IMG/VR virus record: IMGVR_UViG_3300049217_000071
Coordinates: 62,001 to 126,000 of that record
Direction: 5' to 3' (one strand)
DNA: 64,000 nt
In this document: positions 20,037-49,026 of the stretch, piece after piece
Numbering within the stretch: the first letter of the stretch is position 1
Layout: the number at the start of each line of letters is the position of its first letter
Translations under genes and position numbers: made by a program
The notes under the pieces: model-generated
What the model saw: only the letters and a program-made list of their open reading frames with translations
The model's database searches: none
Told to the model about the DNA's origin: nothing

Positions 20037-20208
20037 CGGAATTGATAGAGTTGACAACGAGACGGGTTATATATTGGATAACTGTATTACGTGTTGTAAG
20101 ATATGCAATTACGCCAAATCTACGATGCCTTACGAAGATTTCATTACGTGGATCGATAATCTTGTCAAATATCGAGTATCACTAAATAATACGGAGAATG
20201 TCCTATGA
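20035..20208 (+). pseudogene. HNH endonuclease C-terminal remnant
   Basis: no start; NGIDRVDNETGYILDNCITCCKICNYAK, same family as the 10193 and 24278 HNHs; stop overlaps NAMPT ATG. Confidence 0.88.
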
Positions 20209-21602
20209 ATGAGAATTACCTGTTTGATACTGACAGCTATAAAGCAAGCCATTATCTTCAGTATCCCGAAAAAACCACGAGTATGTTTTCTTACGTCGAA
20301 AGCAGGGGCGGAGATTACAATGCAACCGTTTTCTTTGGGCTACAATACTTCCTCAAGGCTTATCTTACTTATCGCGTTACGCCCAAGGATGTGGAAGAAG
20401 CTAAAGAGTTCTATACTGCTCATGGCGTGCCATTCAATTATGATGGTTGGATGTATGTTGCTAAAGACCTAAAAGGTAGGTTGCCTGTCAGGATTAGGGC
20501 AGTGCCAGAGGGAACTATCGTTCCAACCCACAATATCTTGGTAAGCATCGAATCGACCGATCCTAAGGCCTTTTGGGTTGTTTCCTGGTTGGAGACAATG
20601 TTGCTACGATACGTGTGGTATGGAACTACCGTAGCCACCAGAAGTCGTAGAATTAGGCAGACAATCTTGGAAGCTTTGCGAAAGACTGCCGATGCTCCTG
20701 ATACAGAAATCAGCTTCAAACTTCATGACTTTGGTTCTCGTGGGGTGAGCAGCCAGGAAAGTGCTATGCTTGGAGGCGCAGCTCATCTCATCAATTTTAT
20801 GGGCAGCGATACCATCGCGGGCATCAGATGCGCTAACAAATACTACGACTGCCCGATGGCAGGTTTTAGTATTCCTGCTGCGGAACACTCTTCTATCACT
20901 TCGTGGGGTAAAGAACACGAGGTAGATGCGTATGCCAACATGCTAACACAGTTTGCCAAACCAGGAGCTTTGGTAGTTGTGGTAAGCGATAGCTATGATT
21001 TGTGGAATGCCTGTGAGCATCTCTGGGGCGAACAGCTCAAGCAGAAAGTTATAGATTCCGGTGCGACGGTTGTAATTCGTCCTGATAGTGGCCATCCTCC
21101 GGCCGTAGTGCTCAAGACCCTACAGATATTGGATAGTAAGTTTGGACACACAATCAATACTAAGGGGTATAAAGTCTTGAACAATGTTAGGGTTATCCAA
21201 GGTGATGGCATCAATGAGCACTCGATAAGAGACATTCTGAATGAGTTTATGTGGGATAAATACAGTGCCACCAATGTTGCCTTTGGTATGGGTGGTCAGC
21301 TATTGCAAGGTCTCAACCGAGACACTCTCAAGTTTGCTATGAAGTGTTCTTCCATTACTGTCAATGGTGAAGTGCGAGATGTCTTCAAGGATCCGATCAC
21401 CGATCACGGTAAAGTAAGCAAGGCAGGACGCTTGGATCTGGTCAAACGAGATGGTCATTTTGAGACGATTGAGATTAGCCGAGGAGACCAGGCTTCTCAC
21501 GACAACTTCAGTGAGATGCAAACTGTCTATGAGAACGGTCAGATTTTGATTGACGATACGTTCGAGAATATCCGTGCTCGTGCTAAAGGAGAAATGGTAT
21601 AA
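20205..21602 (+). CDS. nadV: nicotinamide phosphoribosyltransferase (NAMPT)
   Basis: TDSYKASH, HDFGSRG, SIPAAEHS, VSDSYD, IRPDSG, IQGDG, FGMGG.LLQ, RDT..FA.K. Confidence 0.95.
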   Translation: MNENYLFDTDSYKASHYLQYPEKTTSMFSYVESRGGDYNATVFFGLQYFLKAYLTYRVTPKDVEEAKEFYTAHGVPFNYDGWMYVAKDLKGRLPVRIRAVPEGTIVPTHNILVSIESTDPKAFWVVSWLETMLLRYVWYGTTVATRSRRIRQTILEALRKTADAPDTEISFKLHDFGSRGVSSQESAMLGGAAHLINFMGSDTIAGIRCANKYYDCPMAGFSIPAAEHSSITSWGKEHEVDAYANMLTQFAKPGALVVVVSDSYDLWNACEHLWGEQLKQKVIDSGATVVIRPDSGHPPAVVLKTLQILDSKFGHTINTKGYKVLNNVRVIQGDGINEHSIRDILNEFMWDKYSATNVAFGMGGQLLQGLNRDTLKFAMKCSSITVNGEVRDVFKDPITDHGKVSKAGRLDLVKRDGHFETIEISRGDQASHDNFSEMQTVYENGQILIDDTFENIRARAKGEMV

Positions 21603-22749: not shown

Positions 22750-23042
22750 TGACTATCGAAGAAGAGATTCAACATCTCATTACGTTTTTACGACACCCTG
22801 GTGGATTCGATGTAGATATGAGTGGGATCTTATGTATTCGTCCTATTGATGAGGGCTCTCCTCCTACTTCCTGGGAAGTTGATTGGGAAGAGATAGATGA
22901 CGGTATCATCCTCAATTTCTCAAAAGAATTTCCCAACCTTGAAGAGGCGGCTCAGTTCTTCGTGGAGAAAAGGCACTACCTGTGTGAAGGTGCGGATTTT
23001 CAATTGATAAGAATGAAAGAAGCGGGATTGATCAATGAGTAA
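22746..23042 (+). CDS. hypothetical protein
   Basis: ATGA coupling. Confidence 0.6.
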   Translation: MMTIEEEIQHLITFLRHPGGFDVDMSGILCIRPIDEGSPPTSWEVDWEEIDDGIILNFSKEFPNLEEAAQFFVEKRHYLCEGADFQLIRMKEAGLINE

Positions 23043-23949
23043 TGTCATACTGGGAACGGCAGTAGCGGATGCTTTGGGAATGCCCTTCGAGAAGAAGCTG
23101 TCTAACGACCCGCTTTTGTTGGCTTGGGACGGTAAGACCTTTTTAGGCAGCGAGCATCATAAGCTGAAGCCGGGTCAATGGACAGACGATTCGCAATTCT
23201 CTCAGGCGGTTGCCCAATCTCTGATTCAGAATAATGGATTCAATCCACAGGATTTGGCCGATCGTTATGTGGATCTGTTTACTTCGGAAACCATTCGAGG
23301 TTATGGAAGAACTACTTTGTTGGCCGTGACCAACCTCTTGGAAGGGAAGCACTGGAGTGAATCTGGCGTAGCCGGTTCCTATGGTAATGGCACGGCAATG
23401 AGAGCCGCCCCCTTCGGTATTTACTTCCGCAATGACTTGAAGATGTTGGTAGAGGCTTGCAAGATTGATAGCGCCATCACTCATGCTTCCGAAGAAGCCG
23501 AGGCCGGTTCTATCGCCATTGCTTTGGCCACAGCCTATGCGGTCAATAATGATCTGGAAGATGTATTGGAGCGCCTGCATGAGAAACTGCCTGACAGTAA
23601 GGTCAAGACACTGGTGTATAGTTTGAGTGCCTTGCTGGATACCAAGCACATTGCTCCTTCAACGGCTCTGCGTGTTCTGGGCACCAAGGCTGATGTGAGA
23701 GAGACAGTGCCTTCTGCCCTATATTGCTTCCTCAAGTTCAAGAAGTATGGGGACGCTGTTATTGCGGCTATTCGAGCCGGGGGAGATACTGATACTACAG
23801 GCGCCATTGTTGGCGCGATGTTTGGAGCTAAGCTGGGGATGAACGGAATGGATCGTGCCATCTATCAGCAGGTAGAAGATTTCGATAAGCTGGTGGAATT
23901 AGATAGCCAGCTTTACAATCGATCCAACGACAACTTTCTAAGGAACTAA
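23035..23949 (+). CDS. ADP-ribosylglycohydrolase (DraG/ARH family)
   Basis: G.AVADALG, WTDD, GNG.AMR, ITH, GGDTDT.GA. Confidence 0.95.
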   Translation: MSNVILGTAVADALGMPFEKKLSNDPLLLAWDGKTFLGSEHHKLKPGQWTDDSQFSQAVAQSLIQNNGFNPQDLADRYVDLFTSETIRGYGRTTLLAVTNLLEGKHWSESGVAGSYGNGTAMRAAPFGIYFRNDLKMLVEACKIDSAITHASEEAEAGSIAIALATAYAVNNDLEDVLERLHEKLPDSKVKTLVYSLSALLDTKHIAPSTALRVLGTKADVRETVPSALYCFLKFKKYGDAVIAAIRAGGDTDTTGAIVGAMFGAKLGMNGMDRAIYQQVEDFDKLVELDSQLYNRSNDNFLRN

Positions 23950-31964: not shown

Positions 31965-32984
31965 ATGTCAAAGTTAGAGTATGTTTGGTTAGATGGCTGT
32001 AAACCTATGCAGAGTTTACGTAGTAAAACCAAAATCTTCAATAGGGTAAACTTACTAGACAGTTTTCGATTAGATCAATGCCCCATGTGGGGGTTTGACG
32101 GCAGCTCTACGGAACAGGCTACCGGAGACAAATCAGATTGTGTATTACAGCCAGTCTTTATGACCAGAGATCCTCAACGTAAAGGTGATTGTTATTTGGT
32201 AATGTGTGAGGTGCTCAATGCAGATGGCACACCTCATGCCTCTAATACCCGAGCCACCATTGAAGACGATAGTGAGGATTATTGGTTTGGTTTTGAGCAG
32301 GAGTATTTCCTATGGAATCCTGAGACCAATAAACCATTAGGTTTTCACGAAGTGCATACCACTCGTCCTCAAGGCCCTTATTATTGTTCAGTAGGTGCCA
32401 GCAATGCCTTTGGTCGAGAAATTGTGGAAGAGCACCTGGATGTATGTCTCGAAGCTGGCCTCAAGATCGAGGGCATCAATGCTGAGGTGGCCCCGGGCCA
32501 ATGGGAGTTTCAGGTTTTCGCCAAGGGAGCTAAGTTAGCAGGAGACCAATTATGGTTGGCCCGCTATCTATTGGAACGAATTGGCGAGAAACACGGAGTA
32601 GCTATCAATTGGCATTGTAAGCCCCTTGGTGATACAGACTGGAATGGCAGTGGAATGCATACCAACTTCTCTAATTCTCTATTGAGAACCTGTGGTAAAT
32701 CAGAAGTCTATGCCAAGGTATGTCAGGCTTTCAAGCCCGTGGTCAAAGAACATATGGATGTCTATGGCCCCCATAATGAAATGCGCTTGACAGGTAAACA
32801 CGAAACGGCTGCCATTGACCAGTTCTCCTACGGGATATCTGACCGAGGAGCCTCTATTCGTATCCCGATGGCTACCGTCAATAACGATTGGAAGGGCTGG
32901 TTAGAGGATAGGCGACCAAACAGTGCCGCTGACCCTTATCTGGTAGCTTCTAGAATTATCAAGACTCTCAAGACCGTTGGCTGA
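31965..32984 (+). CDS. glnII: glutamine synthetase type II
   Basis: EYVWLDG, LRSKT, FDGSST.QA, GFEQEY, QGPYYC, NAEV..GQWEFQ, WNGSGMH.NFS, RLTG.HET, RGASIRIP, EDRRP. Confidence 0.95.
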   Translation: MSKLEYVWLDGCKPMQSLRSKTKIFNRVNLLDSFRLDQCPMWGFDGSSTEQATGDKSDCVLQPVFMTRDPQRKGDCYLVMCEVLNADGTPHASNTRATIEDDSEDYWFGFEQEYFLWNPETNKPLGFHEVHTTRPQGPYYCSVGASNAFGREIVEEHLDVCLEAGLKIEGINAEVAPGQWEFQVFAKGAKLAGDQLWLARYLLERIGEKHGVAINWHCKPLGDTDWNGSGMHTNFSNSLLRTCGKSEVYAKVCQAFKPVVKEHMDVYGPHNEMRLTGKHETAAIDQFSYGISDRGASIRIPMATVNNDWKGWLEDRRPNSAADPYLVASRIIKTLKTVG

Positions 32985-33130: not shown

Positions 33131-35002
33131 ATGTCATCAAATCGCATTACCGAGCTGGCTGATAAGATTACCCAGGCTCGATTGGACTATTACAATGGTC
33201 AGCCAACCGTTTCTGACAAGATTTTCGATGCTTGGGCCGATGAGCTTCGCACCCTGGACGCTAATCACATAGCTTTGACGGCTGTAGGTGCTCCTGTCGG
33301 CCCTTCCGAATGGAAGAAAGCTAAGCACCAGATCCCGATGGGATCTCTCAACAAAGTCAATCAACCTGCCGAAATGTTGGACTGGGCCAGTGATAAGAAC
33401 TGCAAGTCCTGGTTTATGACGGAAAAGCTGGACGGACTCTCTATAGAAGTGATCTATGAGGGTGGTAAGGTGGTACAAGCCATTACCCGAGGTGATGGTG
33501 AGACGGGCGAAGACATTACGGTCAACGTGATTCGTATGGGTGGAGTCAATCCCGATTTGAAAACTGACTTCAATGGTTCCCTTCGTGGTGAAATCATTAT
33601 GAAGAAGAGCATTCATCAGAAGTTCTTCGCTGATAAAGCCAATCCTCGCAATGCAGCTTCTGGTGTTTCCAAGCGTTTGGATGGTGTGGATGTGGATAAG
33701 CTCGACATTCTCTTCTACCAAGTTTTGGGTGATGTAGATTTCAAAACGGAAGAAGACCAGTTCAAGTGGTTGCAGAAGCATAAAGTCGGCACTCCCAACT
33801 ATTGGATCTGGAGTTCGGCTCTTGCCATCAATGTTATGTGGCGTGAATACCAAGACAAAGAGCGCGATAAGCTGGATTATGATATCGACGGACTGGTGGT
33901 TCGTATCAATGACATGGCCGATCAAATGGCTTGTGGTGATAAAGACCTCCGCCCCTTGGGTGCTATGGCCTTCAAGTTTGACAATGAGACCCGTGAGAGC
34001 ACTATCAAAGACATCATCTGGCAGGTGGGCAACAGTGGACGCCTAACTCCGGTGGCTGTGGTGGAGCCCGTTCTCCTGGTGGGAGCTATGGTTTCCCGAG
34101 CCAGCTTGTATAACATTGCCTACATTGAGGAATTGGGTTTGGATATCGGGGCCCGCGTCCTGGTGGCCCGAGCTAATGACGTGATTCCTCGCATTGAGGA
34201 GTTGGTCAAGGGTACCAAGACGGTAGCCAAGATGCCCAAGAAGTGTCCTGATTGTGGTGGAATAGTGGATATGCAGGGTGAGAACCTGATTTGCACCAAC
34301 ACGGAGAACTGCCGATCCCAGATCATTGGTCGCATCAAGAACTGGATCAAAGAACTCAACCTGTTGGAGTGGGGGGATTCTTTGGTGGAGAAGTTGGTGG
34401 ATGCTAAGAAGGTCAAGAACATTGCTGACCTCTATACTCTTCAAGTGGATGACATTTCCAAGTTGGATCGCTTGGGAGATAAGACGGCCAAGAAGTGTTT
34501 GGATATCTTGAACGCTAATAAGAATGTAGCTTTGGAAGTCTTTTTAGGCGCTTTATCCATTCCAACTATTGGGCAATCGACGATTAAATTAATAATGAAA
34601 GATGGTTGTGATACTTTAGAAAAGTTTGGTCAGTTAAGTAGCGTTCAATTTGAGCAGGTATCGGGAGTAGGTCCGGTCAAAGCGCGATTTTTAGCTGATG
34701 GACTCAAACATAATCAGCAACTAATCCTTGATTTGTTAAAAAATGGAGTGGAGATCAAAGAAATTGTTGATGGCAAATTGACTGGTAAAAGTTTTGCTAT
34801 TACTGGAACGCTCTCTATCAAGCGCGCTGAGGTTGAAAAATTGATTCAAGACAATGGCGGTGAAGTGAAAAGTAGCGTTGGAAAAGGATTGAACTACCTA
34901 ATTATTTCTGATCCACAATCTACCAGCAGTAAAGCACAAGCCGCCCGAAAGTTGGGTACCGTTCTTATTAACGAGGCACAATTTTTAGACTTGATTAGCT
35001 AA
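33131..35002 (+). CDS. ligA: NAD+-dependent DNA ligase
   Basis: EKLDG, TRGDG..GEDIT, NPRNAA, DGLVV, Zn finger, HhH, BRCT. Confidence 0.97.
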   Translation: MSSNRITELADKITQARLDYYNGQPTVSDKIFDAWADELRTLDANHIALTAVGAPVGPSEWKKAKHQIPMGSLNKVNQPAEMLDWASDKNCKSWFMTEKLDGLSIEVIYEGGKVVQAITRGDGETGEDITVNVIRMGGVNPDLKTDFNGSLRGEIIMKKSIHQKFFADKANPRNAASGVSKRLDGVDVDKLDILFYQVLGDVDFKTEEDQFKWLQKHKVGTPNYWIWSSALAINVMWREYQDKERDKLDYDIDGLVVRINDMADQMACGDKDLRPLGAMAFKFDNETRESTIKDIIWQVGNSGRLTPVAVVEPVLLVGAMVSRASLYNIAYIEELGLDIGARVLVARANDVIPRIEELVKGTKTVAKMPKKCPDCGGIVDMQGENLICTNTENCRSQIIGRIKNWIKELNLLEWGDSLVEKLVDAKKVKNIADLYTLQVDDISKLDRLGDKTAKKCLDILNANKNVALEVFLGALSIPTIGQSTIKLIMKDGCDTLEKFGQLSSVQFEQVSGVGPVKARFLADGLKHNQQLILDLLKNGVEIKEIVDGKLTGKSFAITGTLSIKRAEVEKLIQDNGGEVKSSVGKGLNYLIISDPQSTSSKAQAARKLGTVLINEAQFLDLIS

Positions 35003-35078: not shown

Positions 35079-35669
35079 ATGAGGAAACGCAAAGTATATT
35101 TAGCTGATTCACCAGGACGCCCATCATCACGAGCAGTGTATTTCAATGGGGCTGTGTGGAAACCTGTCGATGACAAGACAAACTATTCGGTGGCTGATGT
35201 AGTTGAATGTTCGACTAATGGTAATCTTCTTTTGGTTGGTAATGAAACTTGGGAAGAAGTTTTTAGGAATAAAGGCGCTGTTAAGTGTAAAATACAAGAG
35301 TGTGAGAATGGGCCCCCTTTCATTAGGGGATTATGTAATACTCATTATCAACGAGCGCAGAGATGTGGTGATGAAAATTACATACCATATATGGCTCCCA
35401 AAGGAACTGGATTCACTCATAAATCAGGATATCGTATAGTTTCTGATGGCAATGGTGGTAAAATTAAAGAGCACCGTTTGGTAATGGAAAAGCATTTAGG
35501 TCGCAAACTTTTACCAGAAGAAAATGTTCACCACAAAAATGGAAACCGCTCTGATAATAGATTAGAAAATCTTGAATTGTGGAGTACAAAACAACCACAA
35601 GGTAAAAGAATAGAAGATTTAGTGGTGTATGCCAAGGAAATATTGAAGCTTTATGGAGATGAATTATGA
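35079..35669 (+). mobile_element. free-standing HNH endonuclease gene
   Basis: EHRLVME.HLGR.L...E.VHHKNG.R.DNR.ENLELW. Confidence 0.92.
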
Positions 35670-36813: not shown

Positions 36814-37013
36814 TGTGCACCTGTGAGAATAGAATGTGCCCCAAATGTGATCCGGGCATTGAAGCTTTCTATCAGCAAAAGCTAAAAGAAGCTGGTTCGT
36901 TTGCAGACTATATTGATGCTAAGGATGTTTGGTATGAGTATTGCGCTCTCAAAGCCGAAGAAGCGGCTGATGATGCTGTGCAACCTAAAGATGAATCGGA
37001 ATGCACTTACTAA
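36813..37013 (+). CDS. hypothetical protein
   Basis: TAATG coupling. Confidence 0.5.
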   Translation: MCTCENRMCPKCDPGIEAFYQQKLKEAGSFADYIDAKDVWYEYCALKAEEAADDAVQPKDESECTY

Positions 37014-37297
37014 TTGCTCTCCTTGCCATTTTCGGTTTAGCCTTTGCTATCAAAGAGACCTCCGGTCCTTTTGATGTCTTGGATAAGCTGCGTGGTTTAC
37101 TGATGCGAAACAAATACGTGGGAGTTTTCTTCTACGGTTTGCTTTCCTGCTATTTCTGCGTGGGTTTCCACTGCGGGTGGATCGTTTATCTATTGAGCGA
37201 GGAAAATTACACGTGGCAATTTTTTATGCTTTATGGTTTGGCTGGCGGAACGGTTTGTTTAATCATTGATGCCTTGCTCTCGAAGCTCCATCAATAA
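37001..37297 (+). CDS. membrane protein (DUF1360-like)
   Basis: GPF....LR, LLSCYFCVGFH, TM helices. Confidence 0.7.
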   Translation: MHLLIALLAIFGLAFAIKETSGPFDVLDKLRGLLMRNKYVGVFFYGLLSCYFCVGFHCGWIVYLLSEENYTWQFFMLYGLAGGTVCLIIDALLSKLHQ

Positions 37298-37964
37298 CAT
37301 TTTGTTTGGCTGATAACGGTCGCAAATTATCTAATGCCCAACATTTTTGGAAGTTAGCATCATTCATAGAAGAATAAAGCAGAGTTGATTGAGGGACAAT
37401 ATGATCAATCTGCCAAGTCCAAGTGGATGAATCATTATCATCCCAAATTTTATGATTGTACGAGCCATGATTTTGCCAGGTCATCCACGGCTCAAAATGC
37501 TTTTCGAGATGCGATTTTAATTCTTGGAAAGAATACGGAAGATATTTAGTTATCGATCCGTTTTTGGATATGGCTTTCTGAACGCTTCTACTAATAATTT
37601 TTCTCAATCGAAAAGCGATATCGTTTTGTCTTCTCTTTCTATCTTGCTCTCTTCGTATTGCCTTATGTTCTGCACGATAATTTCTGTTGTACTCTGAGAT
37701 TTTATCTTTATTCTTTTTCTTGTATGCAGATTTTCTCTTCTTCACCACTTCTGCGTGGTTCAGTCGATATCTTTTTTCGTTTTCTCTACACCGTTCTTTG
37801 TTGTTTTGGTGCCACTCAGTAGTTTTGTTATTTTGACATTCTATACAATAGGGGGCCCAATAAATAGAGATGACACCCGATTTTTTTATGTATTTTCTTT
37901 GCTTAAAGTTGTCTACTGTTAGTTCCAAACTACGATTACAGCTAATACAAATCTTGTGTTTCAT
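37263..37964 (-). mobile_element. free-standing HNH-type endonuclease gene
   Basis: CISC, YCIEC, HLEKHF..WMTW.N.G, WQIDHIVP, CWAL.NLRPL....N. Confidence 0.88.
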
Positions 37965-37988
37965 ATATAGTTATATATCGGACCGAAT

Positions 37989-38069
37989 TTTTTTATTTTG
38001 TGGGGACTTGCGCTGCTCGTTATGAGCCTTATTATAGATGGAGTCTTGACACGTCTCCACCGTGAATAA
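37989..38069 (+). pseudogene. orphaned C-terminus of the 37001 membrane gene
   Basis: FFILWGLALLVMSLIIDGVLTRLHRE* vs FFMLYGLAGGTVCLIIDALLSKLHQ*. Confidence 0.85.
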
Positions 38070-38416
38070 TCCCGTATCGGATTTATGAGATACTGGTTGA
38101 TTATCACGACGTTGTTGCTGTCTGGATGTGGCGGTGAGTTATGGTTTACTCCTAACGGGCATCAATAGAAATACATAATATTCCTCTGTATCTTCCAAAG
38201 AATGATACTATTTTTGTTTTTACTACTGGTAATGAAATGACCGCAGCATTACAAAATGTGAATAAAAATAAAGTAAGACTAATTGATCGAAAGATTATTT
38301 CTGGTCTTGTTGATAATAATGAAAATTTTTGGTTGCAGGTTAATGCATTGCTATATGATACTTTTACTGATTAAATAAATGGATATATTATGGCTAAAGT
38401 AATTAAATAAGCAGAC

Positions 38417-39880
38417 ATGGGAAGCGTCAAAGTTGAAGAATCTATTAAACAATGGACTCTTAACTATACTGACATAATTTTGAATAGTAATAAATTCTAT
38501 TCACTTGAGGTAGTTAAAACTAATAAAGGCTATTTCTTATACACCCAATATGGCAGGGTCGGAGGCACCAAAGCCAAGGAATATCGCCAATGCTCCGATC
38601 AAGCTGATGCCGAATCTGAAGCTACCAAAATCGTCAAAGCTAAAACCAAGAAAGGATATGTAGAAGTATCTTTGGTCAAGTCGGATGTCGGAAGTGATGC
38701 TGCCCAAGCTAAAATAGAAAAAGTCTCAGCTACCACTGAACAACTAAAGAAAGCTGGTATTACCGTTAAAGAAGAGCCTGCCGTTGCCAGCAAACTTCAT
38801 ACAGAGGTTCAGGATTTAGTCAGAACATGGTTCGGCGTAACTCAAGAGTTCGTCGATCTTAACCTTGACACATCCAAATGTTCTTTAGGACAACTTTCAA
38901 TTCTACAGATTACCAAAGGCAAAGACCTATTGGATGAAGCTCGCAAAATTGTTCATATGACAAAACCAGATGAACAAGAGCTTAATAAGTTGACTAATTC
39001 TTACTATAGCAATATTCCTCACAATTTTGGTTATACCAGAATTGATGCCAACGCTTTGCGTTTGGACTCAGACGTTAAGATTGATAAGGCTTTTGATATG
39101 CTTGACGTTCTAAATCAAGCTAAAGATGTCGAAGCAGTTATCTCCAAGAAGAGTGCAGTCGATGCACAGTATGCTACTCTCAATGCCGACCTTGAGTTCA
39201 TTGAGCAGGGTACTCCCACGTTCAAGTGGATTGAGAAGATGGTTCTGGAAACCCGAGCCAGCAACCACAGCGGCTTAGGTAAACTGAAGGTTCACAAGGT
39301 CTTCCGTGTCACTCGTCACGATGAGGACAAGCGATTCATTGAGAATTGCCAAGTCATCGCCAAGGAGTGCGGTAAGTTCGTGCCCTCTGATGTGTATGCT
39401 GGTTTGGTCAAGAACCGTCCTGATGTTCCCAAGGCATTGGAAGACCTCTACCACAAAGCAAATGTCCTTCCTGGTTGGCACGGAACTCGTAGAGCCAATA
39501 TGATTGGTATTACCACCAAGGGACTTCTTATTCGTCCTTCTGGTGTTATTCACGCTGGTAGTATGTTTGGAGATGGCTGTTATTTTGCTTCATCTTCGTC
39601 AAAATCAATTAATTATTGTGATGTTAAGGGATCATATTGGGCACAAGGAAATAATAAAACAGGATATCTATTTCTGTGTGATGTAGCTTTTGGAAATCAA
39701 AAAATGGCTACTGGCTCACATTATTATAATTCAAATAACATCAAGCCATATCACAGCGTATGGGCTAAAGCTGGTCAAGGCGGAGTTATTAATGATGAAA
39801 TGATTACTTACCATGCTACGGGACCAAATCAGCAGCATGCTATAAAATATATAATCGAGTTTGAGACGCAGGTGAAGTAA
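38417..39880 (+). CDS. PARP-family ADP-ribosyltransferase (WGR + regulatory + catalytic)
   Basis: NKFY..E, QYGRVG, K.KKGY; LGQLS..QI; YYS.IPH; WHGT, G.MFG.G.YFA..SSKS.NY, NDE (H-Y-E). Confidence 0.93.
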   Translation: MGSVKVEESIKQWTLNYTDIILNSNKFYSLEVVKTNKGYFLYTQYGRVGGTKAKEYRQCSDQADAESEATKIVKAKTKKGYVEVSLVKSDVGSDAAQAKIEKVSATTEQLKKAGITVKEEPAVASKLHTEVQDLVRTWFGVTQEFVDLNLDTSKCSLGQLSILQITKGKDLLDEARKIVHMTKPDEQELNKLTNSYYSNIPHNFGYTRIDANALRLDSDVKIDKAFDMLDVLNQAKDVEAVISKKSAVDAQYATLNADLEFIEQGTPTFKWIEKMVLETRASNHSGLGKLKVHKVFRVTRHDEDKRFIENCQVIAKECGKFVPSDVYAGLVKNRPDVPKALEDLYHKANVLPGWHGTRRANMIGITTKGLLIRPSGVIHAGSMFGDGCYFASSSSKSINYCDVKGSYWAQGNNKTGYLFLCDVAFGNQKMATGSHYYNSNNIKPYHSVWAKAGQGGVINDEMITYHATGPNQQHAIKYIIEFETQVK

Positions 39881-40140
39881 TGAAAACAGATGACGCTCTC
39901 TATAAAGAGATACAAAAAGATATAGCTAATGGTGTAGCGGTAGTTCTTCGAGAAACTATCACATTCGATGGTATAATCAAACAGCAATATATCGTAAGAA
40001 TGTTTTTAGATGGAATCAATATTATGCTTTGGAAATACTCAGACATCACATCTAGGTGGGAATCCAAGTCAATGAGTTGGCTACAGTTGGACGCGCAAGA
40101 AATAAAGACGCTACAAACATTTCTACTCAAGTTCAACTAA
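39880..40140 (+). CDS. hypothetical protein
   Basis: TAATG coupling to PARP. Confidence 0.55.
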   Translation: MKTDDALYKEIQKDIANGVAVVLRETITFDGIIKQQYIVRMFLDGINIMLWKYSDITSRWESKSMSWLQLDAQEIKTLQTFLLKFN

Positions 40141-40806
40141 GTGGGGCCAAGTAATTCCTCTAATAGCTCGTGAGATAGCTGATTCACTAACATTTAACAT
40201 TTTGCTCAGTTGAACGAATGTCATCCCTTCTCGATGTAATTTTCGTGCTTGAAGAACGATTTCGTCGGTAAGTTTGGCAAAGCTATTGGCACTACCTAAG
40301 ATTTTTTTACCATAGAATGGATTATCGGCCCCAAAGAACTTTCTATTTGGATTTTGGCTCATTAGCTGTTTAGATTGTTGGCTGTGTTGTTTTCCGAAGA
40401 AACTGTTTCCGGCACCCTGTCTTTGTTCTGACATTGATTGTTTGGTTTCTTCTGAATGATGTTTTCCGAGCATACTTGGTGTTCGAGGTTTTATCACTAC
40501 CGTTTTGGTAGCTAACTGTCCGCCTCCCGTTAGGTTATAGCCAAACTCTTTTTTGTTAGACCGGAAAAATTGAACCCAAAATTGTTCAGCCTCATCTATT
40601 GTTTCTTTTGTGTGTTGCTCAATTTCTATAAACTCAAAATTATCTAAACCATATTTTCTGATGCTTCGATATATTGGCTTGTTGTTGAGCTTCGTGAAAG
40701 CTTCGTATTTATGGCGGCCCTGGCGCCTTTTCATATTGTTAGTTTGCCCTACATAAAGTTTTGAGTTTGTTTTGTTGCGGATAATATAGATAGAATACAT
40801 AGTCAT
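40123..40806 (-). mobile_element. GIY-YIG endonuclease gene (NUMOD3-like repeats)
   Basis: SIY.I.N..N.KLYVGQT, GYNLT.GG, GKHHSEETK, FFGKQHS. Confidence 0.92.
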
Positions 40807-40867
40807 ATTCCTATATCATCATATTGATAGGATGTGGCGGTGCAGGCCGAAATAAGTCGAGGAAATA

Positions 40868-41350
40868 TTGATCGAAATAATTACTGGCGACCTCTTGGCG
40901 TCTAAAGAAAAGTATCTGTTGCATCAGACTAACTGTATCTCTACCAAAGGTGCAGCCGGAGTTGCCAAATCTATTTTTGATAAGTATCCTTATGCTGATT
41001 GCTATGCTGATCGTATCGAAACGTCCAAGCCCGGAACAATCGATATTCGGGGTAATGATCAAGATCAGAGGTTGATAATCAATCTTCACGGTCAGTATTA
41101 TCCTGGTCGCTCCCGATATCCTCTTTCAAGTTTAGATGGTCTAGCTCCTCGTCAGAAATACTTTTACAATGGTTTATTGCGTGTAGCCAAGATCGAGAAC
41201 CTGAAAAGTATAGCATTGCCTTGGAGGGTTGGTTGTGGTCTTGGTGGCGGAGACTGGGAATGGTATTTGGGAACGCTGACTAACTTCGCTAACTATGTAG
41301 GTGAAAAGGGCGTCAGAGTTTGTGTTTACCGTAGAGAAGGAGACGAGTAA
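40868..41350 (+). CDS. macrodomain ADP-ribose hydrolase
   Basis: I.GDLL, HQTNC, GAAGVAK.I, SIALP..VGCGLGGG.W. Confidence 0.92.
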   Translation: MIEIITGDLLASKEKYLLHQTNCISTKGAAGVAKSIFDKYPYADCYADRIETSKPGTIDIRGNDQDQRLIINLHGQYYPGRSRYPLSSLDGLAPRQKYFYNGLLRVAKIENLKSIALPWRVGCGLGGGDWEWYLGTLTNFANYVGEKGVRVCVYRREGDE

Positions 41351-41781
41351 TGGCTATCAAATTCTATCGCACTAAAGATCCGCACGGGTATATGGGCAAC
41401 TTCTATCGAGCTAGAATGTTCATCTATGGCCGTTGGTGGAACTGGGTGGAGTCTCCTTATCAGGCAGAGAAGAGTTTAGATCGAGCGGAACAGGATATGA
41501 TCTGGCAGGCACAGAAGCCAATGGAGGCCAGAGACCTGGGACAGAAGGTCAAGATGCGAGAGGGCTGGGATCTCGTCAAGGATATGGTGATGTATGATTG
41601 CGTCATGGCCAAGTTCTTGCAACACAAGAACATCCGCGACCAATTGATCGCTACCGGAGACGAAGAGCTAATCGAAGATTCACCCGTCGATTGGTATTGG
41701 GGTTGCGGCAAAGATGGAACTGGACAGAATCATCTGGGCCAGATTCTTATGCGAGTTAGAAAAGAGTTGCAGGGCGAGTAA
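41350..41781 (+). CDS. NADAR (YbiA) family protein
   Basis: FY, NF, VE..YQA.K, W..VK..VM, AKF.QH, L..TG...L.E.SP.D.YWG, GQN.LG.ILM.VR. Confidence 0.95.
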   Translation: MAIKFYRTKDPHGYMGNFYRARMFIYGRWWNWVESPYQAEKSLDRAEQDMIWQAQKPMEARDLGQKVKMREGWDLVKDMVMYDCVMAKFLQHKNIRDQLIATGDEELIEDSPVDWYWGCGKDGTGQNHLGQILMRVRKELQGE

Positions 41782-41795
41782 ATTATCGCTGGCCC

Positions 41796-41823
41796 TTGAC
41801 ACGGTATTTACAGGATTTAGGTT
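41796..41823 (+). promoter_or_regulatory. sigma70-type promoter
   Basis: TTGACA-16nt-TAGGTT. Confidence 0.6.
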
Positions 41824-41849
41824 CATCAAACATTTCAGGAGAAAACAAA

Positions 41850-42344
41850 ATGGCTACTTTAGAAGATACGGTTCGTTCGGTTGTGCAGGATTTCATCAAC
41901 AATGCCACGCTCTTTACAGCGTTGGATGTCAGCAATGCGGTCAAGCAGTCGCTCCCCAATGCTCGCCACCGTGAGGTGAGGGACGTGGTGCGCAATATGT
42001 TCTGCTCTGACATCGAGTCGCAGGGTTGGGCTCGTAAGGGTATTACGGTCAATCTGGAGGACGGCACTACGGCCGAGGCTCTTCTGTATCATCCCGCCAG
42101 CGATGCCTGGGACTTGGATACCAAGTATGATGATCAGAAGCGTGCTCAAACTTCCTTCCGCCCCGTGGTGGCAGCACAAGCCGCTTTGGCTCAGGCAGTT
42201 GCTTTGGCTCCGGTTGTTGCTACGTCCGGTCCCGCTTCAACCCCAGCTCCTGCTGCTATGGCTTCGACTCCTATGCCGAATGCCAGAACCATGTGGGACG
42301 ATATGTTCAAGACGCAGCCCTCTCTTTTCCCGGTGAAGTCGTGA
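41850..42344 (+). CDS. hypothetical protein
   Basis: AGGAG RBS; Ala/Pro-rich tail. Confidence 0.7.
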   Translation: MATLEDTVRSVVQDFINNATLFTALDVSNAVKQSLPNARHREVRDVVRNMFCSDIESQGWARKGITVNLEDGTTAEALLYHPASDAWDLDTKYDDQKRAQTSFRPVVAAQAALAQAVALAPVVATSGPASTPAPAAMASTPMPNARTMWDDMFKTQPSLFPVKS

Positions 42345-42571
42345 AAGTCAAGTTGCAAGGCCGCGCCACCAACATCAAACGTGGTGATGAGTTTACGGAG
42401 GTAACCTTGGCTTTTCAAGGCAAGGTGCTGAACACCAGGTTCATCGTAGCCAAAGAAACTACGATGCAAGTGGAGTTGAAGATCAAGTCAGTCATTGCTG
42501 ATGAAATCAAGTTCGGCTCTCTCTTCACGGTTACCTTGGATGACGAGACGCACGAAGAACGCCTGGACTAA
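42341..42571 (+). CDS. hypothetical protein
   Basis: GTGA coupling. Confidence 0.6.
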   Translation: MKVKLQGRATNIKRGDEFTEVTLAFQGKVLNTRFIVAKETTMQVELKIKSVIADEIKFGSLFTVTLDDETHEERLD

Positions 42572-42573
42572 CG

Positions 42574-43383
42574 ATGTATCGGCAAACCAATGTCATCTAC
42601 TATCGTGGAATAGAGTTTGAGCGAGAAGAGTTAGTTCACGCCCAAAAACTTTTTACCTGCACTAACCGATTGCCAGAGATCCATAAAGGAGATTTGGTGA
42701 TCGGTAGGTATTCTCTGTATCCATTCTATGCGGATCAAGAGAAAGATATCGAGTATCTGGGCGCTACACTCATCAATTCTTATCAGCAGCACCGCTACAT
42801 TGCGGACTTGCAAAACTATGTGTATGACTTGCAAGATCTAACTCCCAAGACTTGGGATGATCTGCAAAGCATTCCTGAGGTAGGTCCTTTTGTCATCAAG
42901 GGAGAAACCAACTCTCGTAAGTCTAACTGGCTACGAGATATGTATGCTCCCGACAAGAAGGCGGCCATTGATATCTGTAATCGATTGGGTAATGATGGGC
43001 TGATGCAACAGCAGAAGCTTTACATCCGACAGTATGTGCCTTTGGCCAAGTTGTTGGACGGTGTCAATGGCATGCCTGTCACGATGGAGTTTCGCTTCTT
43101 TGTCGCCTGTCAAAAACTATTGTGCGGCGGCTACTATTGGCAAAACTATGTGGATGATTTACCGGCCAAACCCAGTGAGACGCAAGTTCCACTTGATTTC
43201 CTCAACAAAGTCATTACTCGTGTGGGAGATAAGTCTAACTTCTACGTCATTGACGTGGGGCTGACACAAAGTGGTGAGTGGATTGTTATTGAGCTGAATG
43301 ATGGCCAGCAATCTGGTCTCTCTTGTATTGATCCGGCCGAACTATACCAGAAGTTGGGTTTGGTCATTGAGGGATTGATCTAA
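42574..43383 (+). CDS. ATP-grasp protein (R2K/DUF4343-like)
   Basis: FVIKG, EFRFF, FYVIDVG, WIVIELNDGQ.SGL. Confidence 0.85.
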   Translation: MYRQTNVIYYRGIEFEREELVHAQKLFTCTNRLPEIHKGDLVIGRYSLYPFYADQEKDIEYLGATLINSYQQHRYIADLQNYVYDLQDLTPKTWDDLQSIPEVGPFVIKGETNSRKSNWLRDMYAPDKKAAIDICNRLGNDGLMQQQKLYIRQYVPLAKLLDGVNGMPVTMEFRFFVACQKLLCGGYYWQNYVDDLPAKPSETQVPLDFLNKVITRVGDKSNFYVIDVGLTQSGEWIVIELNDGQQSGLSCIDPAELYQKLGLVIEGLI

Positions 43384-46045: not shown

Positions 46046-46750
46046 ATGAAGGCAACCGTAGAAAAAGTCATCCAAACTTATCTTGAAGTAAAAAGTATCC
46101 GTAAAGCCGCCGAATTGACAGGCTATTCAAAATCTGGTGTTCAGCATTTGTTGACGACCAATAATGTCGCCTTGTTTCCACGCAGCAGGGGTGGGGCCGA
46201 AAATTCTTCTCGCAAAGCCATTTTGGATTTGGACGCTTCTAATCCAAGAAGGTTAGTTCGTAATACCGGCTATATGACGGATTTATACATTGACAAGAAG
46301 ATGTCAGTCCCTGAAATTGCTCTCCAATTAGGAATAAGTACCGCAACAGTTTTTACTGGTTTAGAACGGTGTGGCATTGCATCAAGAACAATAGAAGAAG
46401 CATTGACCGGTAAGCCAAGGCCAGCCTCACAAGGATCCAAAAACCATAACTGGAAAGGTGGACTATCTGGCTGGAGGAAACTGGCCCGTGGTAGGCTCAA
46501 CGAACATTTTGTTCGCCCAATAATGAAACGAGATAACTTCTCCTGTCAGTGGTGTGGCTCGAAGAAGAATATCGTAGTTCATCACCACAAACGCTCGTTT
46601 ATGGAGATTGTCAATCTAGTCAGACAACAGTGTGATGAAAAAGATATAGACCAGTTTGTCAAACTCATAATTAGCGAACATTCATTAGATGACGGAATTA
46701 CGCTTTGCAAGAAGTGCCACGACAATCACCATAAGGAACACGGGAAATGA
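46046..46750 (+). mobile_element. free-standing HNH endonuclease gene
   Basis: two HTH, NHNWKGG, RDNF.CQWCG, VHH, GITLCKKCH...H. Confidence 0.9.
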
Positions 46751-47220
46751 TAGTAGCTTTTACGGGTCATAGGCCAGAAAAAATCGGAGGATACAGACTC
46801 CCTAACCCCACTTACATTCACGTCTGTCAAGAGATCGAAAAGACTCTGACGGAACTCCGGCCCTATATGGTCATCACGGGAATGGCTTTGGGTGTCGACC
46901 AATGGGCAGCTAACATAGCCCGTAAGATGAAGATTCCTTATATCGCTGCCATTCCTTTCGAGGGCCAAGAGTCCAAATGGCCTAAGCGGAGTCAGCGGAC
47001 TTATCGCGCTCTCCGTAAGCTGGCTATGGGTGAAACCATTGTCAGCCCTGGAGAGTACTCGGTAGAGAAGATGCAGATCCGTAATCAGTGGATGGTAGAT
47101 AACGCGGATGCCGTCATTGCCGTGTGGGATGGAACTCGGGGTGGAACCAAGAACTGTATTGAGTATGCTAAATCTCAGAACAAGCAAATTTATTACATTG
47201 ACCCGCGCCTTGACAAGTGA
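46747..47220 (+). CDS. SLOG superfamily YspA/DUF1273 protein
   Basis: FTGHRP, GMALGVDQWAA, PF.GQ...W, RN.WMVD, VWDG..GGT.NC..YA. Confidence 0.9.
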   Translation: MIVAFTGHRPEKIGGYRLPNPTYIHVCQEIEKTLTELRPYMVITGMALGVDQWAANIARKMKIPYIAAIPFEGQESKWPKRSQRTYRALRKLAMGETIVSPGEYSVEKMQIRNQWMVDNADAVIAVWDGTRGGTKNCIEYAKSQNKQIYYIDPRLDK

Positions 47221-47429: not shown

Positions 47430-47513
47430 GCCTATGTGGCGGAATGGCAGACGCGCTCGTCTCAAACACGAGTCCCGAAAGGGGTGTGGGTTCGACTCCC
47501 ACCATCGGTACCA
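47430..47513 (+). tRNA. tRNA-Leu (CAA)
   Basis: ctcgt-ctCAAac-acgag, long variable arm, CCA. Confidence 0.93.
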
Positions 47514-47514
47514 A

Positions 47515-47775
47515 TCATTTCAGGTTCTTGTAAGTCTTGATTCCCCTTCGTAGCAGTATTCTTCCCAATGTAGAATTGGTGATTTCGTTCTCAAAGAACT
47601 CTTCGTTGATATTATTGATGTCTTCTAAATCTGAAGCACTTACTCTAATGTTGAGCTGATAGGTATAAGTGTATCCATCATTGGCGGGAAAGCCAGGATG
47701 TCCTGGAAATCGTTTTCCATAACCATCACTGTAGCCGTCATTATCAACATTGTATATGTGTTTGTTTTTAGGCAT
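47515..47775 (-). CDS. possible ribbon-helix-helix DNA-binding protein
   Basis: AAGGAGG RBS; LNIRVS..D...I.......STLGR.LL..G. Confidence 0.5.
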   Translation of the reverse strand: MPKNKHIYNVDNDGYSDGYGKRFPGHPGFPANDGYTYTYQLNIRVSASDLEDINNINEEFFENEITNSTLGRILLRRGIKTYKNLK

Positions 47776-47850
47776 TTAGCCTCCTTGTTAGTTTCGTTAG
47801 GCTCGTTAGCTTTCCTACTCATAACTCTTTATTGATAGATCCGGTGCAAA

Positions 47851-48238: not shown

Positions 48239-48254
48239 GGAAAATTAGCTGGGC

Positions 48255-48283
48255 TTGACCATTCAACCGCCCATCGTTATATT
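48255..48283 (+). promoter_or_regulatory. sigma70-type promoter
   Basis: TTGACC-17nt-TATATT. Confidence 0.65.
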
Positions 48284-48299
48284 AGGTCGAGAGGTTATA

Positions 48300-48911: not shown

Positions 48912-49026
48912 GTTTTTGGATGCACCTGTTGCTGGCGGTGAGTTTGACGCTGACTTTTAGCCTCTTGGCTTATCAGTTATTTTTCGATGAATAACATAGC
49001 AATAACGAGATATATACATACCAAAT

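Follow-up and report, generated by a model that had tools for sequence, protein, structure and literature searches.

The WGR and helical domains of PARP1-3 couple the activity of these enzymes to DNA breaks. In eukaryotes, PARP1-3 act together with PARG, TARG1 and ARH3 in reversible PAR/MAR signalling at such breaks, and bacterial PARP-PARG systems are described from Herpetosiphon, with PARG also from Deinococcus and Thermomonospora (PMC4245714). PARPs have been reported in phages as well, among them Xanthomonas phage XacN1 (BBA65562.1), Cellulophaga phage phi4:1 and the Klebsiella phages 05F01 and FBKp34 (PMC7824862, PMC9503650, PMC4245714; for 'NAD-jumbo phages', PMC11662467). Phage PARPs, macrodomains and NADARs are each known already when taken singly; the pairing of a phage PARP with a winged-helix protein, and the erasers nested between them, are absent from these papers.

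In this work, we analysed a window of 64,000 nucleotides from an uncultured giant phage of a moss metagenome (IMG/VR record of 268 kb, CheckV completeness 62%). An initial annotation had placed in it a PARP followed by macrodomain and NADAR genes, together with ARH, NAMPT, SLOG and NAD+-dependent ligase genes; all of them were found where it had put them. Judging by which genes are present, by their intact catalytic residues, and by synteny and co-occurrence, the best explanation, with roughly even chances of being right, is that the locus is central to a eukaryote-like ADP-ribose metabolism that the phage encodes.

The PARP gene (38417..39880, plus strand) encodes a PARP2/3-like ADP-ribosyltransferase of 487 aa, in which WGR (4.7e-16), helical regulatory (HD; PARP_reg, 6.7e-19) and catalytic ART (1.1e-24) domains lie in one chain, all Pfam matches being above the curated cut-offs. 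Its closest PDB chains are human PARP1 (1e-31) and PARP2, and the alignment equates H355, G356, Y389, K396, S397, Y400 and E461 with PARP1 H862, G863, Y896, K903, S904, Y907 and E988. Of these catalytic and nicotinamide-pocket residues, H355, G356, Y389, S397, Y400 and E461 are unchanged across 13 phage PARPs, some of them just 25-31% identical. The WGR-regulatory-catalytic enzyme announced by the initial annotation is thus borne out, with H355, Y389 and E461 of the H-Y-E triad intact; its WGR motif is spelled YGR, and a clade-specific insert of ~34 aa precedes H355. Activation by DNA breaks and poly(ADP-ribose) synthesis are putative functions, for which the intact PARG signature in this genome (see below) is indirect evidence, keeping in mind that an H-Y-E triad is no proof of polymer synthesis, since PARP3, for example, yields only mono-ADP-ribose. 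A 236-nt contig from a peat metatranscriptome is 99% identical to the PARP gene, which is weak evidence for its transcription as DNA carry-over is possible.

On the 5' side, an NAD+-dependent DNA ligase gene (33131..35002, plus strand; adenylation, OB, HhH and BRCT domains) is syntenic 3-8 kb from PARP in all clade loci, and a predicted 98-aa membrane protein with a CxxC..C motif (37001..37297, plus strand) is kept just upstream of PARP clade-wide and is not found in distant lineages. The ORF of 45 aa immediately 5' of PARP (38237..38374, plus strand; 100% aa identity by tblastn) lies in a block of DNA (blastn 38163-39870) that is 92.5% identical in L098, a related locus diverged outside it, and therefore belongs to an exchanged PARP cassette, which has moved between lineages independently of macrodomain and NADAR. 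On the 3' side, the reported order of PARP, small ORF and GIY-YIG is present, although the strand of the last gene had gone unstated: it is a free-standing GIY-YIG/NUMOD3/HTH homing endonuclease (40123..40806, minus strand) convergent with PARP, assigned by Pfam and PHROG from its nuclease and its NUMOD/HTH DNA-binding modules. The 86-aa ORF before it (39880..40140, plus strand), which begins within the stop codon of PARP (TAATG), matches no family, and none of the related loci has a homologue; it is thus probably part of a mobile insert or not a gene. The GIY-YIG gene is missing at this site in most relatives (L002, L006 and L010 have GIY-YIG-like matches), which hold LAGLIDADG endonucleases, a restriction-modification pair or other ORFs instead, and the PARP-macrodomain gap spans 0.06-2.9 kb among related loci. 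Both inserts are variable and mobile, and lie outside the system.

The macrodomain gene (40868..41350, plus strand, TTG start) encodes a protein of 160 aa without a second domain. Its Pfam Macro match falls under the family cut-off (E 0.045), and its assignment to the TARG1/ALC1-like class, SCO6735/Bt_1257 subclass, is due to the match to phrog_335 (9e-19), the family profile compared with PDB (Bt_1257 2e-5, M. tuberculosis DarG 1e-3) and the AlphaFold2 model (pLDDT 94.6). The VIA Z scores of this model are 17.7 for DarG, 17.6 for Bt_1257, 17.1 for TARG1 and 15.3 for SCO6735, with alphavirus and MacroD types below DarG, Bt_1257 and TARG1 (~14). Strand 69-76 (LIINLHGQ) is closed by Q76, which is profile-aligned with the Gln of Bt_1257 (..NMIGQ) and present in this protein and in all aligned clade orthologues; its equivalence to DarG K80 and TARG1 K84 comes from reading the strand (HIINFPTK) and from PMC9411070 rather than from a residue-level structural superposition. 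A basic loop (R81, R83) follows Q76, and the GGG phosphate loop (126-128) is present. The initial annotation had invoked DarG-type macrodomains, and in this point it has to be revised: Gln76 replaces the catalytic Lys of DarG and the DarT-binding domain is missing. A DarG antitoxin was rejected on these grounds, the protein being a single domain of 160 aa whose neighbours are PARP, homing endonuclease and NADAR genes rather than DarT. The SCO6735/Bt_1257 subclass is a better likeness, with the best profile match, Z of 15.3-17.6, the Gln, the long basic loop and a single domain of ~160 aa, but identity is only 22-24% and the protein is here phage-encoded and PARP-linked; the further active-site residues of SCO6735, Val25 and Asn27, and the loop length find no confident mapping onto it. 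In SCO6735 the Gln at the catalytic-Lys position, Gln85, is essential (PMC9411070). Since the class acts on thymine-ADP-ribosylated DNA and/or Glu/Asp-ADP-ribosylated protein (PMC9411070, PMC8501950), the phage macrodomain is predicted to be a mono-ADP-ribosyl hydrolase for thymine-linked and/or acidic-residue-linked ADP-ribose.

The NADAR gene (41350..41781, plus strand) is of the YbiA family (Pfam 7e-34, E. coli YbiA 1.4e-24), and the proposed coupling to the macrodomain gene was seen directly, as its ATG and the stop codon of the macrodomain gene overlap (TAATG). Residues E34, K41, E109, D114 and W117 correspond to E43, K50, E125, D130 and W133 of P. nicotianae NADAR, whose catalytic roles are described in PMC11543638, and all of them, with E109 (Glu type) as the Glu of the last strand, are kept in every aligned clade sequence. 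As guanine-ADP-ribose is hydrolysed by all tested NADARs, YbiA and T4 gp30.3 included (PMC11125620), this protein is predicted to be a guanine-N2-ADP-ribose (N-glycosidic) hydrolase.

The next gene encodes a PARP-associated winged-helix protein (41850..42344, plus strand, from the conserved ATG at 41850; the ORF opens with TTG at 41796), in which a low-complexity linker joins an N-terminal winged helix (residues 1-100) to a conserved motif, W..LF..QPSLFP.K, at the C-terminal end. Proteins of this family are what phage PARPs have as their deeply conserved 3' neighbour, directly adjacent to PARP in distant lineages, and the distant members carry an AbrB/MazE-type DNA-binding domain. Only in the clade of this phage are macrodomain and NADAR nested between the two genes. 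The claim that PARP and erasers co-occur in relatives is upheld within the clade, where the order PARP-macrodomain-NADAR-winged-helix is found in ~21 of 28 informative related jumbo-phage loci despite frequent insertions, and finds no support at genome level among distant phages: macrodomain and NADAR each accompany 6 of 8 distant PARPs, not significantly more (P 0.24 and 0.12) than the 56% and 48% at which they occur in jumbo phages generally (PMC9503650). Moreover, single-clade synteny is partly shared ancestry. Closer to the gene, three distant lineages (L055, L048, L058) have a NADAR 1.5-7 kb 3' of PARP and on its strand, and the 4 erasers observed no more than 10 kb from PARP compare with 1.3 if placement were uniform (P ~0.04).

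The components can also be lost one by one. NADAR is missing in L010 (remnant), L012, L036 and L038, the macrodomain in L098, and macrodomain, NADAR and PARG all in the complete genome behind L044, with PARP kept in each; conversely, L022 has lost the PARP catalytic half and kept both erasers. Thus there is no obligate unit, and a toxin-antitoxin-like pair was rejected because PARP persists without NADAR, without macrodomain or without both. The L022 macrodomain differs at positions that are conserved elsewhere (C123A, G128A), which fits relaxed constraint after PARP loss in this single case.

Outside the window, 73 kb upstream of the PARP locus, the phage encodes a bacterial-type PARG (G000:C1:28182-29018; PF10021 6.5e-49; T. 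curvata PARG 3sig 1.7e-57), in which the PARG_cat_microb signature GGG-X6-8-QEE is intact as GGG-X7-QEE (GGGFLAGALAQEE; NPGGGFLAGALAQEE). PARG was found in five further clade genomes, and most distant PARP phages are without it. Among 50,697 GenBank phage records PARG occurs in 20 and PARP in 16 (each ~0.03-0.04%), with one record in both lists; since both are this rare, their joint presence in the clade is far from chance. The ARH gene (23035..23949, plus strand; Pfam 8e-68) encodes an ADP-ribosylglycohydrolase for which MJ1187 and ARH3 rank ahead of DraG and ARH1 in PDB. NAMPT, a NadV-type nicotinamide phosphoribosyltransferase (20205..21602, plus strand; Pfam NAPRTase 6e-62, NAMPT_N 1e-29), supplies NAD+ via salvage, two CTP_transf_like genes and a Nudix gene lie elsewhere in the phage genome, and a YpsA-family SLOG domain protein (46747..47220, plus strand; PF06908 6.6e-19) is encoded downstream. 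The phage-run ADP-ribosylation cycle suggested before is favoured by the intact PARP, the clade co-occurrence and the PARG in the same genome, and weakened by the dispensability of its parts, by the separate exchange of the PARP cassette, by the many phages that have the macrodomain family and no PARP, by the distance of PARG and its rarity in distant PARP phages, and by the distant base-rate counts; with PARG, which lies outside the window, the cycle is likelier than the evidence of the initial annotation by itself permitted.

According to these data, we infer enzymatic activities, activation at DNA breaks, substrates and the working of the erasers on PARP products as follows. The WGR break sensor, autoinhibitory helical domain and H-Y-E domain would have PARP activated by nicks, gaps or ends of phage or host DNA during replication, and PARP would then use NAD+ to place ADP-ribose on itself, on DNA-bound proteins and possibly on DNA, the winged-helix partner being one candidate target or recruiter. 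PARG and the ARH3-like hydrolase would trim the polymer, and in this clade the leftover mono-ADP-ribose would be cleared by the two enzymes placed between PARP and its partner, the macrodomain acting on acidic residues or thymine and the NADAR on guanine. The products of NAMPT, the two cytidylyltransferase-family genes (candidate NMNAT) and the Nudix gene could turn the compounds released back into NAD+, which would also serve the ligase. Such a cycle acting on DNA or DNA-bound proteins is, to judge from the genes, about an even bet. Writer and eraser pairs of this sort have been published: PARP1 and TARG1 work on DNA where Okazaki fragments are unligated (PMC11102865), PARP15 and TARG1 on RNA bases (bioRxiv 10.64898/2026.03.31.715305), and SCO6735 acts on thymine-ADP-ribose and on auto-modified PARP1 (PMC9411070). 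Host-defence marks of DarT2 type (thymine) and DarT1 type (guanine) could be stripped by the same macrodomain and NADAR; the two roles may coexist, not being mutually exclusive.

The main alternative, less likely than the cycle, is that this second role is the only one, with macrodomain and NADAR as stand-alone counter-defence that strips thymine marks of DarT2-type and guanine marks of DarT1-, ScARP- or YarT-type toxins from phage DNA, in a region that gathers NAD/ADP-ribose accessory genes, and with PARP having a separate job. ALC1-like macrodomains, the Gln-type SCO6735 included, reverse DarT marks and protect cells (PMC9411070), and the tested NADARs have the guanine activity in common (PMC11125620). 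Moreover, 477 phage records contain the macrodomain family, in nearly every case with no PARP, as opposed to 16 that have PARP, macrodomains and NADARs are frequent in jumbo phages regardless of PARP (PMC9503650), and L022, L098 and L044 show that erasers and PARP can each remain without the other. However, this would not explain why both genes are nested in an otherwise adjacent PARP/winged-helix pair in most clade loci despite insertions, nor why NADAR lies 3' of PARP in three distant lineages; the L022 substitutions, a single case, also point to a link with PARP, and YbiA and phage NADARs gave no in vivo protection against DarT1 (PMC11125620).

Two further explanations are improbable. PARP might be a host-takeover effector like T4 Alt/ModA/ModB, targeting host proteins such as RNA polymerase or nucleoid proteins while the hydrolases adjust the modification or shield the proteins of the phage, as was proposed for phage PARPs in a jumbo-phage survey (PMC7824862); ADP-ribosyltransferases occur in >40% of jumbo phages (PMC9503650). 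The retained WGR and autoinhibitory helical domains, the conserved partner with DNA-binding distant members and the position just 3' of the DNA ligase gene argue against it, and no head-packaging genes near PARP or fusions to MuF-type delivery domains were found. The chance is similarly slim that macrodomain and NADAR act on small molecules within NAD+/ADP-ribose housekeeping, such as ADP-ribose-1''-phosphate or O-acetyl-ADP-ribose (RNA repair, sirtuins) or ADP-ribose-derived immune signals. Such roles have been proposed (PMC7824862, PMC9503650), the family is labelled 'phosphatase' in PHROG and GenBank, the ADP-ribose-1''-phosphate phosphatase Poa1p is structurally close (Z 16.6), the first activity described for YbiA was that of an N-glycosidase on riboflavin intermediates (PMC11125620), and the window is rich in tRNA/translation genes, a Thg1-like enzyme among them. 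Nevertheless, no KptA/Tpt1 was found in the incomplete 268-kb record, the best sequence relatives (Bt_1257, SCO6735, DarG) act on DNA (PMC9411070), and both genes are linked to PARP and a DNA-binding partner, not to RNA-repair genes.

A bolder version of the phage-run cycle, to which we give a small chance, is that PARP and its winged-helix partner are a phage sensor of DNA breaks or replication intermediates that ADP-ribosylates DNA bases or ends directly, to which this clade added thymine and guanine erasers, PARG and ARH3. If true, a virus would for the first time be seen to run a fully reversible ADP-ribosylation cycle on both nucleic acids and proteins, and the winged-helix protein would be a new class of PARP cofactor.

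Compared with DarTG2, DarT1-NADAR and YarT-YbiA, the locus likewise has an H-Y-E-clade transferase beside macrodomain and NADAR, which in those pairs reverse base-linked DNA ADP-ribosylation, but its writer is a regulated PARP instead of DarT or YarT, its macrodomain has neither the Lys nor the DarT-binding domain of DarTG2, and the single loss of erasers with PARP staying indicates no antitoxin-like dependence. The earlier phage PARPs belong to the same family (25-31% identity, same triad), and their genomes, too, are large and encode NAD+ synthesis and an NAD+ ligase; neither an adjoining macrodomain or NADAR nor a bacterial-type PARG was found in these phages. The bacterial PARP-PARG systems share a short WGR-HD-ART PARP and a GGG-X6-8-QEE PARG, whereas in the phage the two genes are 73 kb apart, not in one operon, and PARP adjoins a TARG1-class macrodomain, a NADAR and a winged-helix protein. 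The eukaryotic PARP1-3 system is matched in the WGR-HD-ART architecture with H-Y-E, in the joint presence of PARG, a TARG1-class macrodomain and an ARH3-like hydrolase, and in the NAD+-consuming ligase near PARP. It differs in that the phage PARP is without zinc fingers or BRCT and has the YGR motif, the PARG is of bacterial type and the macrodomain has Gln rather than Lys. For the winged-helix partner we know of no eukaryotic counterpart, and the phage, which encodes all of these proteins itself, adds a NADAR, an enzyme missing from vertebrates.

Our most probable reading of the locus, to which we give about an even chance, is that it takes part in an ADP-ribosylation cycle run by the phage. 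The PARP (38417-39880, plus strand, 487 aa) is followed by an unconserved ORF (39880-40140, plus strand, 86 aa), a GIY-YIG homing endonuclease (40123-40806, minus strand, 227 aa; Pfam GIY-YIG, NUMOD3 and a weak HTH; homing endonuclease in PHROGs), the macrodomain gene (40868-41350, plus strand, 160 aa, TTG start) and the NADAR gene (41350-41781, plus strand, 143 aa; Pfam NADAR 7e-34). PARP and the 86-aa ORF share a TAATG in which the stop of the first overlaps the start of the second, and the macrodomain and NADAR genes are joined in the same way. Promoter and terminator scans gave signals at or near shuffle levels and no operon boundaries. The NAMPT (20205-21602), ADP-ribosylglycohydrolase (23035-23949) and NAD+-ligase (33131-35002) named in the initial annotation are all real, as is its SLOG gene, which encodes a YpsA-type protein (46747-47220). 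Two tandem DUF6939 paralogues (21623-22189 and 22162-22749) lie between NAMPT and the ADP-ribosylglycohydrolase and may be members of the NAD/ADP-ribose gene set.

The window covers bases 62001-126000 of an IMG/VR record that has 268 kb and is 62% complete (CheckV). The DNA of the locus (37900-42500) is identical, with zero differences, in one moss metagenome contig and has partial matches in lake, soil, peat and freshwater metagenomes, with no near-identity match among GenBank phages. No cultured phage has a ligase more than 32.5% identical to that of this phage, which has no close cultured relative. The window also carries 17 tRNA genes (3331-9974 and 47430-52379), two Kelch-repeat proteins (5044-6027 and 26370-27608) and, at 2138-2767, 7758-8699, 28811-29641, 29652-30719 and 31965-32984 taken jointly, an RNase HII, an EF-Ts homologue, a Thg1-like tRNA-His guanylyltransferase, a PheRS alpha-like and a glutamine-synthetase-like protein.

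The sequence of the PARP suggests no inactivity of the enzyme. Its WGR, PARP_reg and catalytic domains all exceed the Pfam cut-offs, and the closest solved structures are those of human PARP1 (1e-31) and PARP2. We aligned it with 16 relatives from the clade, that is, related uncultured jumbo phages with the same PARP region, and separately in a 13-sequence set including five cultured-phage PARPs (28-31% identical). Invariant in the latter are H355, G356, Y389, K396, S397, Y400 and E461, corresponding to H862, G863, Y896, K903, S904, Y907 and E988 of PARP1; nearly all aligned phage PARPs show YGR at the WGR motif. Directly before H355, the PARPs of this clade carry an insert of about 34 residues (39335-39470, residues ~307-352, catalytic domain) that is conserved among them and missing from cultured-phage PARPs and PARP1. 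In a peat metatranscriptome, one 236-nt contig matches the PARP gene (38597-38832) with 2 differences, which hints at its transcription in nature; DNA carry-over is possible, and this single contig does not show co-transcription.

A large protein collection contains 543 PARP homologues at E <=0.001; the best 120 of these are 66-94% identical, many of them on contigs of 300-490 kb. About 30 clade loci were recovered from IMG/VR, with the common order ligase, small membrane protein, PARP, variable gap, macrodomain, variable gap, NADAR and a 160-180-aa protein. No clade locus contains a homologue of the 86-aa ORF, and GIY-YIG-like matches occur in only three (L002, L006 and L010). The co-occurrence in relatives on which the initial annotation had staked its proposal is observed, with PARP, macrodomain and NADAR all present in about 21 non-duplicate loci. 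The unit is not obligate: NADAR is absent from four loci (L010, which keeps a remnant, L012, L036 and L038), the macrodomain from one (L098) and both from another (L044), and in one more (L022) the PARP is reduced to its WGR domain with both erasers retained. Since some loci have lost erasers and kept the PARP, we rejected a toxin-antitoxin reading in which they would be an obligate antidote. In L022 (9929-10480 and 11985-12470) unrelated ORFs replace the remainder of the PARP, the macrodomain is substituted at two positions that are otherwise conserved (C123A and G128A), and a weak second PARP-like match is found at 18022-18252.

The closest relative by PARP (L098, 94% aa) matches the window with 92.5%-identical DNA only across 38163-39870 (L098:1445-3152), a block made up of the PARP and a 45-aa upstream ORF (38237-38374), whereas divergence is much greater in its flanking genes (73% aa for NADAR, 45% for the next gene). 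Thus, this cassette has been exchanged between lineages. Downstream of its PARP, L098 has a LAGLIDADG endonuclease; an N6/N4 DNA methyltransferase and an MvaI/BcnI-type restriction endonuclease (L098:4119-6132) then lie between PARP and NADAR in the absence of a macrodomain, followed by the C-terminal remnant of a different PARP allele (L098:6138-6434). Judged by these comparisons, the PARP 3' flank is an insertion hot spot, and with a homing endonuclease at the PARP 3' end in both, GIY-YIG in the window and LAGLIDADG in L098, the exchange of the cassette looks like an endonuclease-driven one. Homing-endonuclease-like genes (HNH, LAGLIDADG, EndoVII-like and GIY-YIG) are unusually dense over the whole window (12429-12962, 14379-15449, 24278-24853, 35079-35669, 37263-37964, 40123-40806 and 50847-51323), and several differ in presence or position in relatives.

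Local profiles run on distant loci identified the gene directly after NADAR (41850-42344) as the true conserved neighbour of PARP in phages. The winged-helix domain at its N-terminus is encoded immediately downstream of PARP in L048, L049, L055, L056 and L058 and 0.5-5 kb from it in L050, L054, L057 and L063; family members include L048:11363-11950, L058:11319-11909, L056:1517-2143, L049:6403-7455, L055:10380-11726, L054:10900-11586 and L106:5001-5903. A profile of the family matched 1609 clusters (50% identity) among 1.84 billion proteins, and a PARP gene lies directly upstream in four of the seven distant members with readable contigs. The domain model (residues 1-100, pLDDT about 90-96) has the topology helix-strand-helix-helix-hairpin, and all its top structural matches are winged helices, with modest Z (<=7.9). 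A PDB profile search gave only a non-significant match to a DnaJ C-terminal region, and a Protein Atlas feature search only sub-threshold leads. Distant members have an extra AbrB/MazE-like C-terminal domain; in its place, the proteins of the window's clade have a linker and end in a conserved W..LF..QPSLFP.K (42290-42344), which we take to be similar to bacterial sliding-clamp-binding motifs (QL[SD]LF). Among family representatives, 22/150 end in Q..LF. Searches of the incomplete genome turned up neither a beta-clamp nor, in a search that had no positive control, a T4 gp45-type clamp. A complex prediction for PARP and this protein, folded without alignments, scored 0.00, a value that speaks neither for nor against a complex. 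We regard the domain as a candidate target or cofactor of PARP. Downstream of this gene lies an R2K-clade ATP-grasp (peptide or amino-acid ligase; 42574-43383) whose position is kept in several clade members.

As the winged-helix gene is a conserved neighbour of PARP, the macrodomain and NADAR genes are nested within a PARP/partner pair. This nesting is the best contextual argument that the erasers may work with the PARP.

The macrodomain reaches only E 0.045 with Pfam Macro, and recognising it needed a profile and a structure model; PHROG 335, annotated as phosphatase, matches at 9e-19. A profile of 43 homologues matched Bt_1257 (2e-5), alphavirus nsP3 and M. tuberculosis DarG (1e-3) and SCO6735 (0.014). 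The AlphaFold2 model (pLDDT 94.6) gave Z of 17.7 with T. aquaticus DarG, 17.6 with Bt_1257, 17.1 with TARG1, 16.6 with Poa1p and 15.3 with SCO6735, versus about 14 with MacroD and alphavirus types. Profile matches and structural ranking together place it in the TARG1/ALC1-like class, whose catalytic position is a lysine in DarG and TARG1 and a glutamine in SCO6735 and Bt_1257 (PMC9411070). The corresponding residue, Q76, closes strand 69-76 and is kept in every aligned clade orthologue; its equivalence to DarG K80 is read from alignments and strand position, not from residue-level superposition. Since this conserved residue aligns with the Bt_1257 glutamine and a basic loop comes after it, the protein is SCO6735/Bt_1257-like rather than a DarG, whose second domain it also lacks. 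In SCO6735, Gln85 is essential and thymine-linked ADP-ribose is efficiently removed from DNA, an activity that the authors consider a unifying function of the class (PMC9411070).

The NADAR is closest to E. coli YbiA (1.4e-24), and the NADAR structure from P. nicotianae can be aligned with it as well. The subfamily-defining Glu is E109 and the other active-site residues, with roles as described (PMC11543638), are E34, K41, D114 and W117; all are conserved in every aligned clade sequence. Guanine-linked ADP-ribose is hydrolysed by every NADAR tested to date, but neither YbiA nor the T4 NADAR rescued cells from DarT1 (PMC11125620).

A whole-record search located a bacterial-type PARG 73 kb upstream of the PARP, beyond the window, on contig C1 of the record's own genome (G000:C1:28182-29018; L107:6183-7019; PF10021 6.5e-49). 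Its GGG-X7-QEE signature is intact (GGGFLAGALAQEE), and it matches T. curvata PARG at 1.7e-57. The gene is present in five other clade genomes and missing from the complete genome behind L044, which likewise has no macrodomain or NADAR beside PARP. Outside the clade it occurs in only one distant PARP genome and in 0/5 cultured PARP phages. Among 50,697 GenBank phage records, 20 have PARG and 16 PARP (each about 0.03-0.04%), with one in both lists, and a 2014 survey knew viral PARPs and PARGs only from separate viruses (PMC4245714). The joint presence of these rare genes across the clade is the strongest indirect sign that polymer may be synthesized and its reversal run by the phage. Moreover, the phage ADP-ribosylglycohydrolase (ARH) is nearer ARH3 than DraG, and the same genome encodes one Nudix protein and two cytidylyltransferase-family genes that may be NMNAT; KptA/Tpt1 was not found in this incomplete genome.

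In the five cultured phages with PARP, neither a macrodomain nor a NADAR lies next to it; the Klebsiella phages among them encode a homologous macrodomain 2.4-5 kb upstream. In eight distant viral genomes with PARP, each at least 90% complete, NADAR and a Pfam macrodomain are each found in six, not above the jumbo-phage rates of 48% and 56% (PMC9503650; P 0.12 and 0.24, respectively), and we dropped this genome-level co-occurrence as evidence. NADAR lies 1.5-7 kb downstream of PARP on the same strand in three distant lineages. Proximity is mildly enriched, with four erasers within 10 kb of a PARP versus 1.3 expected (P about 0.04) under uniform placement, a generous null given the tendency of phage accessory genes to cluster. 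Pfam and hhalign identified no hidden macrodomain or NADAR among the candidates near distant PARPs (Cellulophaga gp030, FBKp34 gene 112, XacN1 ORF412/413 and, in L044 and L048, the ORFs that separate PARP from the winged-helix gene).

In the proposed cycle, a break-activated PARP would modify itself, DNA-bound proteins such as the winged-helix partner and perhaps DNA. PARG and the ARH3-like enzyme would remove the chains, the macrodomain and NADAR the residual or base-linked mono-ADP-ribose, and salvage would restore NAD+. Precedents exist in PARP1/TARG1 on DNA at unligated Okazaki fragments (PMC11102865), PARP15/TARG1 on RNA bases (bioRxiv 10.64898/2026.03.31.715305) and the action of SCO6735 on auto-modified PARP1 (PMC9411070). 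The main rival, which we consider possible and less probable, is that the macrodomain and NADAR are independent anti-DarT enzymes. The thymine and guanine activities of their relatives would suit such a role, and the distant genomes do not tie these genes to PARP beyond base rates; the nesting inside the PARP/partner pair speaks for the phage-run cycle. The two roles can coexist.

If the cycle is real, the whole enzyme set, together with NAD+ salvage, would be encoded by jumbo phages of about 450-500 kb that are widespread in the environment, with representatives in moss, peat, lake and soil metagenomes, and these would offer a compact system for PARP signalling without chromatin. The winged-helix domain of some 100 residues, beside PARP in many unrelated phage lineages, would be a candidate PARP target or cofactor. 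The presence of a PARP with thymine-type and guanine-type DNA de-ADP-ribosylases would make base-linked DNA marking by PARPs directly testable, and both erasers would be candidate anti-DarTG counter-defence genes. In a limited literature search we found no description of the nested PARP-macrodomain-NADAR-partner arrangement, of the widespread PARP/winged-helix pairing or of PARP and PARG together in a phage clade. Phage PARPs, macrodomains, NADARs and NAD+ salvage have already been described, including PARP in 'NAD-jumbo phages' (PMC7824862, PMC9503650, PMC11662467). Reversible poly- and mono-ADP-ribosylation by PARP, PARG, TARG1 and ARH3 counts as an essentially eukaryotic process, with the full set in only a handful of bacteria (PMC4245714).
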